Shown: piece after piece, positions 23,946 to 64,000 of the stretch | Position numbering within the stretch: the first letter of the stretch is position 1 | Layout of the letters: every line of letters begins with the position of its first letter | DNA from: Histomonas meleagridis 2922-C6/04-290x | Lineage: Eukaryota; Protista; Parabasalia | Assembly: GCA_020184695.1 (NCBI GenBank) | Contig: JAANOX010000113.1 | Span: forward strand, 1 to 64,000 | Length of the DNA: 64,000 nucleotides | Direction of reading: 5' to 3' | Translations under genes and position numbers: made by a program | The notes under the pieces: generated by a model | The model's input: the letters and a program-made list of their open reading frames with translations, nothing else | The model's database searches: none | Told to the model about the DNA's origin: nothing

Positions 23946-26359
<2,414 letters not shown>

Positions 26360-26996
26360 ACTTTAAGAGTAAATAATACTATGAATAATAATTAATTTTT
26401 TGTTGTTATGAATTTTTCATCATTTTTTTCACAAAAATTTTCATCAAATTATATGAAAATCATACAATGAAATATGATATAAAATATTCTATTTATCAAA
26501 TTTAATGCGTTAATTATAATATATGAAAACAAACTGAATTTAGGAAATGTTTATTTCAATATTTAAATATTTCCTCTTTTATCCTTGTGAATCTTTTCAT
26601 TTTATTAAGTCGTCACTTTTATGATGTTGAATTTTGTCTTCAAATAATCGTATAATTTCTACATTTTTCTTTTCTGATGCTATCATAAGCGCTGTTTTAT
26701 ATGTTTATAAGTAATTCCAAATGTTTATATGAAATTTCATATTTTTTAAAAATATTTTAAATAAAACAAAGAAATATTTTTAACATCGATATCAATATTC
26801 TCTTGTTCAAGAAGTAATTTAACTATTTCTGTATGACCATTTTCAGATGCAATCATAAGTGCTGTCCAAAATAATTTAAATAATTTCCAAATATTATTTT
26901 GAATTCTCATCAAGCCATATTTTGAAATGAAAAAATTAAAAAAATAATTTCGTTCACAATTTTCAATTCAATTTAAAATTGCAATAATTTTATCGT

Positions 26997-27871
26997 TTAT
27001 ATAGAAAGTGCCTCTGAAATTTCCATACCAGCTCTGCTCATGTCTACTGAAACATATCGAGTATATGCAGAACTTTTCCACCTTCCATGGGCTTTTATGA
27101 TACAATCATTAACATTTTTTAGTGAGGCATAATATGCTGCTCCTATACGAGAACTATGAAATCCATAATTTTGATATTTTTCAACTCCAATAGTCCTAAG
27201 TACATAAAGAAGATGAGCTCTGAGTGTGGATTGAGTTCGAGATTCTATGTGATCATTACTAGAAATTAAGTTCAAATGATTTATAAATCGGAATGGGCTA
27301 TAATCTGTCTTATTATCATTAATATATGTAAACGTATTATTCCCGAACTGATCTGTTTTAGAAGTCTGTATGTTTAGTTTTATTAAGTTTTCGCCTTCAA
27401 TTACAATATCGCTTTTTTTAGAGTTTAGCGCTTCACTTATTCTGAGAAATGCTGCAAACATTAACGATATCAAGAATATAAACTTCAAATTATCAATATT
27501 TGTTGGTGGAAATTTTTCAATTATTTTCGAAAACCATTTTGGATCAAACGGTAACTTTGCATTTGGACAAAAACCTGAATATAGTGACCTTTTTATTCCA
27601 CTCTTAAATATTTTGAATTTTAATGAATGTGTTAATATTTCCAAGTCATTTTGTTGAAAATAATGTGTAAAACTATTAATGTAAGCTAGTAACGTACAAC
27701 ATTTCATATTCTGATTCTTTTTAAATATAATAAATGCAACCATTTTGTTATGAGTAATAGGAAATGGTTCTTCGTGTATTAGATTTATCATCACTTTGGC
27801 ATAAGCATGAATCAGCCTATCATATGTACTTTTCGTTCCTGCTGAAAAAAGTGTCGATGAGAATTACACAT
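26997..27871 (-). CDS. Tyrosine recombinase (phage_integrase fold); probable 1-nt frameshift near the 5' end
   Basis: Catalytic R (FLRISE), K (SKTDQFG), HxxR (FHSSR), H/W (HGRW) and Y (AYTRY). The frame extends upstream of the track's GTG start (SAGTKSTYDRLIHAY) to a TAA. An ATG at 27869-27871 is out of frame by one base across a T6 run. Confidence 0.88.
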
Positions 27872-27934
27872 AATAAAGGCAACTTTTTAAGACGATGACC
27901 AAAGTTCATCGTCTTAAAAAGTTGCCTTTATTAT
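27870..27934. repeat. Perfect 29-bp inverted repeat with 7-bp centre
   Basis: ATAATAAAGGCAACTTTTTAAGACGATGA (27870-27898), centre CCAAAGT, TCATCGTCTTAAAAAGTTGCCTTTATTAT (27906-27934). Confidence 0.97.
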
Positions 27935-28399
27935 TTGTGAAATATCAAATGATTAAAATAAACATAAAATAAAACAAATAAATATTTTTAGCATTAATAT
28001 CGATTCCTTCATGTTCAAGAAGTAATTTCACTATTTCTATATAACCATTTTCAGATGCTAATATAAGTGCTGAATAAAATAATTTAAATAATTTTCAAAT
28101 ATTATTTTGAAATATCAAATTATTAAAATAAATTCTAAATAAAACAAATGAATATCTTTAGCATTAATATCAATTCCTTTTTGTTTAAGAAGAACTTTTG
28201 TAACTTCAGAATGACCTTTGCGTGTTGCCCAATGAAGTGCTGTTTCATTAATTTTATATAAATTCCAAAAAAAAAAAATATTAAACGTTAAATCTTCATG
28301 ATAAATATATTTACCATTAATATCAAATATTTTCTGTTCGATTTGCCATTCAATAAATGATGCAAATTCTTTTTGGTGCTGAGAAAGCATCTGGTTTTA

Positions 28400-30510: not shown

Positions 30511-30621
30511 AAATTATTTAAATTATTTAGTACAGCACTTATATTAGCATCTAGAAATGGTCATACAGAAATAGTTAAATTACTTCATGGACAAAAGGGA
30601 ATTAATACTAAAGACATTTAT
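30511..30621 (+). pseudogene. Orphan single ankyrin cassette with both spacer ends
   Basis: AAATTATTTAAATTATTT (spacer 3' end), then STALILASRNGHTEIVKLLHGQKGINTKD, then ATTTATTT (spacer 5' end). Confidence 0.8.
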
Positions 30622-61419: not shown

Positions 61420-63408
61420 TTATTTAGTGTGTTGATTTATGTATTGTTCAAAAAATTCAATTGTTTCATCGCAACAATAAGATTTTGCTAAATCAAACGC
61501 TGTTTCAAATAATTTTATTATATTCCAAATGTTATTAAGAATCATCAAATTGTTAAAATAAATATTAAATAAAATATTTTAATATTTTTGGGATTTACAT
61601 CAATTCCATCTTGTTCAAGTAATAGTTTAACAATATCAACGTTATTATACTCAGAAGCAAACATAAGTGATGTATAATATGATGTTAATAATTTCCAAAT
61701 ATTAGATTTGAAACCCAATATTATGAGTATAAATATCGAATTAATTAAGTAAACATTTTTATAATTAATATCAGTTTCTTTTCGTTTAAGAAGAATTTCA
61801 ACAATTTCAATGTTACCATTCCGAGATGCTTTCATAAGTGCAATAGTATATACTATATTAGTAATATATAAATTACTATATTAAAATATATATTTTAAAT
61901 TAACACCAAAAAATATTATGAAACATCAAATTATTGAAATAAGTTTTAAACAAAACATATAAATATCTTTAGCATTAATATCAATTCCTTCCTGCAAAAG
62001 AAGCAATTTAACTATTTTTGTTTTACCATATTTAGATGCAAACATAAGTGCTGTTTGGAATAATATAAATAATTTCCAAATATTTTTTATAAATATTAAA
62101 AAATTGAATAAAATCTTGAATAAAACAAATAAGCATCTTTAGTATTAACATCAATTCCTTTATGTTTAAAAAGTAATTTAACTATTTTTGTATGACCTTT
62201 TTTAGATGCAGTCATAAGAATTGTTTCAAATAGCTTAAATAAAATCCAAATATTATTTTGATATATTAAATTATTAAAATTAATTTTAAATAAAGCATAT
62301 AAATATCTTTTGCATTTACATCAATTCCATAGTTAATAAATAAATTTACTATTTCTGAAAAATTATTTGCACATGCAATCATAAATGCCGTATTAAATAA
62401 TATAAATGATTTCCAAATATTTTTTTGAAATATCAAATTGTTATAATATACATCAAATAGAACAACCAAATATCTTCAATATTAGTGTCGATTTCTTCTT
62501 GTTCTAGAAGTAATTTTACGACTTCAACATTATTTTTTTCAGTTGCTAATGTAAGTGCTGTTTTATGATTTTATATTTAACATCAAAATTTGGTTATAAA
62601 TTTCAAAAATATAAAATAAACATCAAAAAAATGAAATAAAAATTTTGATCATTAAGATTAAAACATTTTTTTCCAATAAATAATTTAACGATATCTAAAT
62701 TTCCATTAGCACATGAATCATAAATGCATTCCAACATTATTTATTCTAACATTATATTTCATTTTGAAATTTCAAATAACAAAAATTATTATCAAGCAAA
62801 ACAAAGAAAAATCCAATGCATTAATTTCAATTCCTTTATAATCAATAAGATGTTTATCTGTTTCAAAATGATCATTTTGAGTAGCTAACATAAGTGCTGT
62901 TTCATTTGGAAAGACTCCAATAAATATAAAGAAATTTTAAATTATTCATACAAAAATTCAATTTAATATAAAAATATTTGCAATATTTACTTTAATATTC
63001 TTTTGATTAAGTAGTAATTTAACAACTTCAATATGACCATTATATGATGCATCCATAAGTGGCGTCCAAAACAATTCAATTAAATTCCAAGTATTAATAA
63101 TAAATATTAATTCATTAAAACAAAAATTTTATTATATAAAAAAGTATTTTCATTATTAATATTAATTTTATCATGTTTAAGCATTAACTCTACTATTTCA
63201 ACATGACCATAATGTGAAGCTAAAGAAAGTGCTGTATCAAATATATTTAATAAATTCCAAATAAATTATTGAAGTTCGAAATAGTTAAAGTTAATTTTAA
63301 CTTTTGTAAAGAAATATTTTTATCATTGAGTTGAATATTTTTTTGTGCAAGAAACAATTTTGCAATTTCTAAAAACCCATTTTCACATGCAGCAATTAAA
63401 GGAGTATC
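61420..63408 (-). repeat. Ankyrin cassette array 3: 12 diverged ankyrin segments and 11 spacers
   Basis: Segments mostly 93 nt; spacers from left to right 77, 78, 117, 77, 77, 77, 77, 77, 72, 77, 77 nt. The terminal segment ETAFDLAKSYCCDETIEFFEQYINQHTK* ends at 61420-61422. Confidence 0.88.
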
Positions 63409-63432
63409 AAAAAATTATGATAAATTTTATTT

Positions 63433-64000
63433 AACGGTATGAAAAATTAGATATATAAAATAAACTTTAATAAATAAACTAGTTCCAAAAAATGGAAAGC
63501 ACGATAGAGAACGATAGAAATCAGATGGAAAGCTGGTCGTTGTTAGGATTTTATCTAGAAGATCCAATAAAAGCCAATATTGCTCAAAAAACATACCCAG
63601 GAGTAATGCATGATGAAAATAAAAATCAAGCGATTATAAGAATCAGAAGTTTCGGATTTACATATCGCGATATTGAACATTGTCTAAATACATCACAAAA
63701 GCATATTACATTAGTACTTAAAGAATATCAGCTAAGCGGAGAAGTTTCTTGTAAAAAGAGGGGAAGACCTCTAAAAATTGATAATAATGATAAAGCAAAA
63801 ATTGATGAAATAACCATCTCATCACCAAGGTCAACTTGCAAGCATATTTCACAACAAATAAGCAGTCCAGAAAAATCAATCAAAAAATCAACTATTGCAA
63901 AAATCAGACATGAATTACATTTTTTTTTCAAACCACCCAAAAGGAGACCTCAAATGACTCAAGCATGCTTGGATAGAAGACTTACTTTCGCTTATTCTAT
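63433..64000 (+). mobile_element. Tc1-like DNA transposon, 5' part; left boundary approximate, runs off the window
   Basis: The ankyrin spacer pattern stops at about 63433 and a transposase ORF follows. Confidence 0.65.
63492..64000 (+). CDS. Tc1-family transposase N-terminal region (partial; absent from the ORF track because there is no stop in the window)
   Basis: Hand translation: HTH-like GFTYRDIEHCLNTSQKHITLVLK, KRGRPLK, KSTIAKIRHELHF, KPPKRRPQMTQACLDRRLTFA. Confidence 0.8.
   Translation, partial: MESTIENDRNQMESWSLLGFYLEDPIKANIAQKTYPGVMHDENKNQAIIRIRSFGFTYRDIEHCLNTSQKHITLVLKEYQLSGEVSCKKRGRPLKIDNNDKAKIDEITISSPRSTCKHISQQISSPEKSIKKSTIAKIRHELHFFFKPPKRRPQMTQACLDRRLTFAYS

Follow-up and report, generated by a model that had tools for sequence, protein, structure and literature searches.

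A probable Crypton-like tyrosine recombinase element inserted in an ankyrin spacer of Histomonas meleagridis

The first 64,000 nucleotides of contig JAANOX010000113.1 of Histomonas meleagridis (the window) contain a small array of ankyrin cassettes, and one of the spacers of this array is split on the minus strand by an insert of 1,038 nt that carries a gene for a tyrosine recombinase (YR). We consider it likely that this insert derives by internal deletion from a Crypton-like DNA transposon of ~1.17 kb, with a Cre-like YR as its sole gene, that re-enters DNA at spacers mimicking its own attachment (att) site. Crypton-like is best read here in a broad sense, by gene content and junctions rather than by placement in a clade, and the family to which the insert belongs is a parabasalid-borne and apparently undescribed structural variant of such elements.

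The insert, its junctions and its gene

Each unit of the array is 170 nt long and consists of a cassette and a 77-nt spacer, and the insert divides one spacer into pieces of 42 and 35 nt (Table 1). The spacer rebuilt by taking out the insert is gapless and 94% identical to the consensus of the six empty spacers of the window, which are themselves 91-99% identical to that consensus, and ten other units of the window align gaplessly to the unit rebuilt in the same way. The junctions carry the repeats TATTATTTTGAA and TATTATTTGTGAA, which agree at 12 of 13 nt when extended and share only TGAA as an exact match, so that the insert shows the pattern described for Cryptons, microhomology at both ends and exact restoration of the target on removal, with no target-site duplication. 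In addition, the 22-nt target motif GATATTTCAAAATAATATTTGG recurs five more times in the window at up to three mismatches, always within spacers, where 0.02 occurrences are expected from shuffled sequences. Since the rebuilt spacer, the junction repeats and the motif count agree, the insertion is real and a chance pattern is excluded. An earlier note on this DNA, made from the letters alone, had proposed that the two pieces add up to a 77-nt spacer that fits the consensus and that near-identical direct repeats flank the insert, and its coordinates held when they were checked.

Table 1. Features of the insert and of the array that surrounds it, in window coordinates
Feature	Position	Strand	Remarks
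Inserted element, 1,038 nt	26904..27941	-	Removal rebuilds the 77-nt spacer; alternative ends 26900-27937 because TGAA is shared
Left-junction TGAA microhomology	26900..26903	.	Repeated at 27938-27941; imperfect 12/13-nt extension, 26892-26903 vs 27929-27941
Right-junction TGAA microhomology	27938..27941	.	
35-nt half of the split 77-nt spacer	26869..26903	-	Bears the att-like motif CAAAATAATATTTGGAAATT
42-nt half of the split 77-nt spacer	27942..27983	-	
YR reading frame	26997..27863	-	288 open codons and stop 26997-26999; first ATG 27791; native start and ~17 N-terminal codons missing
Remnant of left subterminal inverted repeat A, 21 nt (AATTCTCATCGACACTTTTTT)	27845..27865	-	Deletion breakpoint ~27844/27845, by comparison with L001:429-584
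Terminal palindrome B-loop-B'	27866..27938	.	33-7-33, 97% complementary, predicted DNA fold -32.3 kcal/mol; abuts the junction upstream of the gene
Right subterminal inverted repeat A'	26904..26990	-	Ends in the family-wide terminal motif GATGAGAATT; partner A mostly deleted
Host ankyrin mini-array	26597..28390	-	N-terminal open reading frame, four cassettes split by ~77-nt interrupting segments, C-terminal tail, stop 26597-26599; Pfam Ank E=2e-8

A frame as long as the 288 open codons of the insert has a chance of ~8e-11 at the local base composition. Taken alone, this open reading frame (ORF) had no Pfam match at E<=1; its ~70 homologues form a well-conserved family of ~302 aa, in which 15 of 17 members match PF00589, and the family profile matches Cre with E=5.5e-11 in an alignment that covers the N-terminal domain and the first part of the catalytic domain. 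The catalytic R, K, H-x-x-R, W and Y are kept in the window copy at columns that are invariant in the family (in the motifs LRISE, SKTDQ, HSSRIG, GRWKS and AYTRY), with alignment to R173, K201, H289, R292 and W315 of Cre. An AlphaFold model of P0001, a full-length relative, reached a predicted local distance difference test score (pLDDT) of 89.1 and has the two-domain fold of YRs, with a helical core-binding domain and a catalytic domain. Its best match in PDB is Cre (E=1.6e-10, template modelling score (TM) ~0.66), the top 32 matches are all Cre or Cre-derived Tre (TM 0.61-0.68), and Xer and integron integrases come next. The ratio of nonsynonymous to synonymous substitution rates (dN/dS) between the window gene and that of a related locus, L001, is 0.086 with dS saturated, and the lineage has therefore evolved as a working protein. 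The window ORF is thus a Cre-like tyrosine recombinase under strong purifying selection.

When the family profile was compared with 1.84 billion representative sequences, 129 clusters were found at E<=1e-30, and the family is therefore sizeable, although nearly all of it is unannotated. Outside parabasalids, the closest named proteins come from a sponge, a tardigrade, a hemichordate and a bivalve and are uncharacterised YRs, and no relative of the recombinase was found in the viral contigs of IMG/VR. Two distant relatives, P0246 (1111 aa, from Tegillarca granosa) and P0323 (679 aa), have either repeats of the recombinase module or a long N-terminal region fused to it.

The window copy has been damaged. 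All full-length relatives start ~37 residues before its first ATG, and its frame extends 23 codons upstream of that ATG before it meets a stop beside the hairpin described below. Relative to L001:429-584, the window copy lacks ~135 nt between CGACACTTTTT and the SxxTKxTY codons. The lost stretch comprised most of inverted repeat A, the upstream promoter region with an initiator (Inr)-like TCATT, which we take to be a parabasalid Inr, the ATG and ~17 codons; the partner repeat A' is kept at the other end. Two near-invariant residues are also altered (HSFRRG to HSSRIG), and most of the gene has no or almost no RNA contig depth. The window copy is best seen as a decaying element that is probably unable to move by itself and could at best be moved in trans. 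The description in the earlier note of an element that encodes only a YR, with all catalytic residues, stands for the residues but needs two corrections: the gene has lost its start and ~17 codons and carries the two changed residues, and the terminal palindrome and the subterminal inverted repeats, which together make up a long palindrome around the crossover point that the note had not seen, also belong to the element.

Relatives and choice of target

The nearest relative of the window protein, P0001, is 75% identical to it and is encoded on 13 short metagenome contigs, ten of which were analysed (L001-L010). These contigs share a segment of 1,172 bp that is 99-100% identical among them (96.5% in L005), while their flanks differ; the elements of the window and of L001 are 75% identical in DNA over the gene. 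Because the elements are near-identical while the flanks clearly differ, they represent separate recent insertions, and spread through duplication of the array was ruled out on the same grounds.

The left flanks of L002, L005 and L006 end in ...TT(G/T)ATATTT, with CAC directly across the cut, and the right flanks of L001, L005, L008 and L009 begin with CAAAATAATATTTG, directly after GAGAATT. All of these flanks are halves of homologous ankyrin spacers that are cut at the same nucleotide as the spacer in the window, and the TTCA core (in gene orientation) recurs at the junctions of L001-L009. In L005 both flanks lie on one contig, and removal of the element rebuilds a gapless spacer of 77 nt. 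The use of the spacer as the att site of a site-specific element, as put forward in the earlier note, is supported by these loci; copies at unrelated sites, which would have spoken against it, did not occur in the subfamily formed by the window copy and P0001, where the left flank of L001 and the right flank of L004 are nevertheless not ankyrin.

A sister element, L137, whose protein is 67% identical, lies in non-ankyrin DNA and has the same core, ATTT followed across the cut by CAAAAT. Because L137 finds this core outside ankyrin DNA, the recombinase appears to read a short core with an att-like flank, ~30 nt of att-like sequence in addition to the core, and the spacers are by a wide margin the commonest carriers of it. 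In the source genome, the depth of DNA contigs over the element is several-fold that of the unique flanks and the pieces are 1-9% diverged, and this coarse measure suggests that the genome holds multiple copies.

The family also reaches Tritrichomonas foetus, where TRFO_11718, annotated as 'hypothetical protein' (MLAK01001393.1, L141:3001-4230), is a member. The inverted repeats and the terminal ...AAAAAGTGGCCTGGTGAGAATT are preserved at this locus, where the upstream hairpin has degenerated, and the family member of T. foetus shares the ...GGTGAGAATT end. The annotated start of TRFO_11718, which gives 362 aa, looks too far upstream. Of two further loci, L139 and L140, one is a pseudogene and the other lies on a short contig that lacks the hairpin.

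Two contigs carry rearranged element ends. At L003:112-153, half of a spacer runs through arm B and the loop directly into the reverse complement of another spacer half, such that two ankyrin arrays stand head-to-head around half a hairpin; the contig was either misjoined in scaffolding or rearranged at the apex of the hairpin. At L015:2110-2140, one element and a diverged second one, in inverted orientation, meet at their right ends (...GGACAATT GGG AATTGTCC...), which suggests an insertion into, or a recombination between, element ends.

Terminal hairpin and mode of recombination

In gene orientation the element is laid out as flank, B-loop-B', A-gene-A', flank. Hairpins equivalent to that of the window copy are found in L001, L137, L138, L012 and L014, the last with two in tandem, and they measure 60-77 nt across the family; this architecture is kept across subfamilies down to ~40% protein identity and in hosts of very different GC content. 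The loops outside the window copy are C:G-closed GAA triloops (GCGAAGC in L012, L014 and L138, CCGAAGG in L001 and L137), whereas the loop of the window copy is C-TTT-G. A GC-richer subfamily (L014:65-187, and also L015 and L016) has its two tandem terminal hairpins capped by GAGCGAAGCGA, which contains the GCGAAGC DNA mini-hairpin motif. In L001, the repeats A and A' (420-498 vs 1455-1535) align by blastn over ~80 nt at 86%, with a core of 56 nt at 95%. When the right end of L001 is joined to its left end in silico, A'.B is an almost exact complement of B'.A, and the non-coding part becomes a single near-perfect palindrome of ~230 nt with arms of ~115 nt and a predicted DNA fold of -94.6 kcal/mol. 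The folds predicted for these palindromes are stable.

The crossover lies directly after the terminal motif GA(G/C)AAT(T), 33-35 nt from the centre of the palindrome. The arms are asymmetric, and their asymmetries are kept in the window copy, L001, L137 and L138. A 2-nt bulge ~12 nt from the crossover recurs in each of the four subfamilies that were compared, and at the crossover itself both the window copy and L001 have CACAAAT vs ACACAT between the arms. These two copies differ at nine stem pairs, eight of which are compensatory, with both sides changed and still paired, and the symmetry of the palindrome is therefore under selection. Rfam has no family for the hairpin and returned only sub-threshold matches resembling microRNA precursors (40 bits vs a gathering score of 105). 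A hairpin formed as a by-product of integration, similar to P-nucleotides, was ruled out since identical hairpins accompany the element to different loci and the loops are conserved, and a hairpin-telomere or protelomerase model was ruled out since the palindrome is limited to the non-coding ends.

This architecture invites comparison with several known systems. The Cryptons are DNA transposons reportedly described by Goodwin in 2003. They encode a YR and no reverse transcriptase (RT), their flanking direct repeats of 4-6 bp reflect microhomology with the target rather than duplication, and a circular intermediate is presumed (Kojima and Jurka 2011, PMC3212892). The present family resembles them in that it encodes only a YR, the single ORF and only mobility enzyme of the 1.17-kb copies, and in its short microhomology without duplication. 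Cryptons are, however, defined as lacking terminal inverted repeats, whereas the family has subterminal inverted repeats of ~80 nt (56-81 nt in L001) and a terminal palindrome of 60-77 nt (73 nt in the window copy). Its elements are also intronless and, at 1.17 kb and ~302 aa, much smaller, and their target is strict and defined by sequence. With Cre/loxP of phage P1 the family shares the best profile and structural match over both domains, the same catalytic residues and, by our interpretation, a conservative recombination at a dyad-symmetric site; protein identity is just 15-17%, though, and the 13-8-13 loxP is split by the crossover, whereas here the crossover falls ~33 nt beside the centre of the palindrome, so that integration leaves the hairpin undivided at one end of the element. 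The attC sites of integrons and the attP(+) site of CTX-phi are folded single-strand substrates of the YRs IntI and XerCD. Like them, the family has an imperfect palindrome with conserved unpaired bases around the crossover (in the window copy, L001, L137 and L138) that is left nearly intact at one end of the inserted unit, minimal partner identity at the crossover and targets repeated in many copies. Unlike them, those systems being bacterial and their recombinases encoded outside the cassette or phage, it carries its own enzyme, which is nearer to Cre than to IntI, and its folding is predicted. DIRS1, finally, has a YR of the same broad eukaryotic group and inverted terminal repeats with an extra complementary segment, but the family has no RT, RNase H or methyltransferase, is ~4 times smaller, and has its extra segment as an external terminal hairpin instead of an internal complementary region.

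In the mechanism that we propose, the recombinase would pair the two ends of the element and excise it conservatively, probably as a circle, in which the right end (A', ...GAGAATT) would join the left end (B, CACAAATAAT...) to give ...GATGAGAATT directly followed by CACAAATAAT...; written out at greater length, the junction of such a circle, or of a tandem, would read ...GGCTTGATGAGAATT followed by CACAAATAATAAAGGC... The joint A'.B-loop-B'.A would be the near-perfect palindrome of ~230 nt, with the att site in one arm and 33-35 nt off its centre. Re-entry would then take place at a site that mimics the att site (TTGATATTT followed by CAAAATAATATTTGGAAA), and we infer that strands would be exchanged inside the shared TTCA, hence the lack of a target-site duplication. 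Every 77-nt spacer of the hugely repeated 170-nt units carries that site, which would make the spacers the main landing pads. Conservative YR recombination is the Crypton model (PMC3212892, PMC13465315), and we lean, with some reserve, towards its form in which a double-stranded circle recombines within TTCA, the attP made by the joined ends with the attB of the spacer.

A doubtful alternative is that the folded hairpin, as single-stranded DNA or as an extruded cruciform, would be the true substrate, in the manner of attC or of attP(+) of CTX-phi. The recombinase would bind the stem A'.B / B'.A and exchange one strand with the spacer, replication would complete the product, and spread by copy-out would become possible. 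The arms of ~115 nt far exceed the needs of a protein-binding site, and the conserved GAA triloop at the apex, the conserved asymmetries of the arms and a partner identity of just 4 nt at the crossover, as in single-strand-exchange systems, all fit a folded substrate. The compensatory changes in the stem fit it as well, but two inverted binding sites for one protein would also co-vary, and a double-stranded mechanism gives an identical integrated product. Moreover, the loop of the window copy is not GAA, the protein fold is nearest to Cre with the integron integrase well below, and no single-stranded form was observed. Less probable still is a full eukaryotic counterpart of integron/CTX recombination, in which a Cre-like enzyme would act on a folded hairpin or cruciform, bulges and the GNA triloop would set the choice of strand, and thousands of spacers would serve both as landing pads and as sites of cassette reshuffling.

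That the recombinase acts on the spacers themselves, and shuffles, deletes and duplicates ankyrin cassettes like an integron or a shufflon, strikes us as very improbable. Each spacer does have an att-like site that resembles arm B over ~25 nt, the 77-nt spacers vary less than the cassettes do, also in the old array at 61-63 kb, and in L003 and L015 the junctions at element ends are rearranged. Homogenisation of tandem arrays needs no recombinase, however, and no cassette exchange was observed; the copies behave as a selfish multi-copy family, the targets of the L137 sister subfamily differ, and the window copy is decaying with almost no RNA. We give next to no credit to the view that the element is a fragment or a non-autonomous derivative of a DIRS, Ngaro or PAT-type retroelement mobilised via RNA. 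DIRS-type elements likewise have a YR next to inverted terminal repeats and further complementary segments (PMC13465315), and distant protein relatives occur in animals, where such elements abound. Nevertheless, domain searches found no RT, RNase H or transposase domain in the window flanks, no ORF for RT, RNase H or methyltransferase was present there or in the family contigs examined, those of 4-7 kb included, and the sole transposase on these contigs is an unrelated DDE-transposase ORF ~1 kb from the element on L012. The layout B-loop-B'-A-gene-A' has its hairpin outside the inverted repeat and lacks the internal complementary region or split direct repeats of DIRS, Ngaro, PAT and VIPER elements. 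The DIRS-fragment reading, which the earlier note had set as a possible refutation, was therefore ruled out, since RT is absent and complete copies of 1.17 kb with sharp, defined ends exist.

Several observations weigh against a Crypton-like element that targets spacers. The left flank of L001 and the right flank of L004 are not ankyrin, and one junction of L003 sits in an inverted spacer; the sister element L137 in non-ankyrin DNA limits the term site-specific, used in the earlier note, to the subfamily of the window copy and P0001. Searches with tblastn and blastn found no other copy in the window, and a site preference within the genome rests on the relatives and on the coarse depth measure. 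No circle junction was found in assembled contigs, and a metagenome scan with a 17-mer, a pattern too short for the purpose, gave 120 loci, none with a recombinase, which are chance matches. Subterminal inverted repeats of this length and a terminal palindrome are at odds with the textbook description of Cryptons, and conservative recombination leaves the rise in copy number without explanation.

As the earlier note had supposed for parabasalids, a full-text search of the literature found no description of YR or Crypton elements from Trichomonas, Tritrichomonas, Histomonas, Pentatrichomonas or other parabasalids, and the 2026 genome paper on T. foetus does not mention such elements. If confirmed, the element would be among the smallest autonomous eukaryotic transposons (~1.17 kb); mariner-type elements measure, to our knowledge, ~1.3 kb. 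Its attachment site and its target would both be defined, and its one protein, a YR, would be compact at ~300 aa; we know of no Crypton so far that offers these three things, the lack of which has kept the mechanism untested. The family would therefore be a tractable system for eukaryotic YR transposition, because attP and attB can be spelled out as sequences and Cre is a good model for the protein, as well as a possible natural site-specific integrase for parabasalid genetics and a test case for hairpin-based recombination outside bacteria. The huge family of ankyrin-array spacers would, if the mechanism is confirmed, be a safe harbour for insertions.

Host array and neighbouring genes

Ankyrin units of 170 nt lie at 55-1061, 26670-28198 and 61486-63474 of the window, with a solo cassette at 30511-30611, and they rank among the most repeated DNA of the source, with a summed contig depth in the millions vs ~500 for unique DNA. 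RNA contigs link ankyrin cassettes via 9-14 nt that code for the canonical 'xxGxT' turn, and no such joints occur among the DNA matches listed. The 77-nt spacers have ACAG at their 3' end and lack a GT at the 5' end. The first interrupting segment of the mini-array (28296-28221, minus strand) is a candidate phase-1 intron of 76 nt of the GT...AG type, in which GTAAAT...GAAACAG is bounded by AATG and CA; its final ~30 nt are homologous to the 77-nt spacers, where its GTAAAT corresponds to CTAAAAAT.

A domain search of the flanks placed the element beside ankyrin sequence, a coiled-coil ORF and a PH-BEACH/BEACH gene. PH-BEACH and BEACH are encoded in separate plus-strand ORFs (23946-24917 and 25211-26359) with ~290 nt between them, which probably form a single gene with an intron or a frameshift. 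A parabasalid host is supported by the nearest named homologue of the BEACH protein of the window, which is from Histomonas meleagridis, at 64% identity over 40% of the query, and that of Tritrichomonas foetus is more distant.

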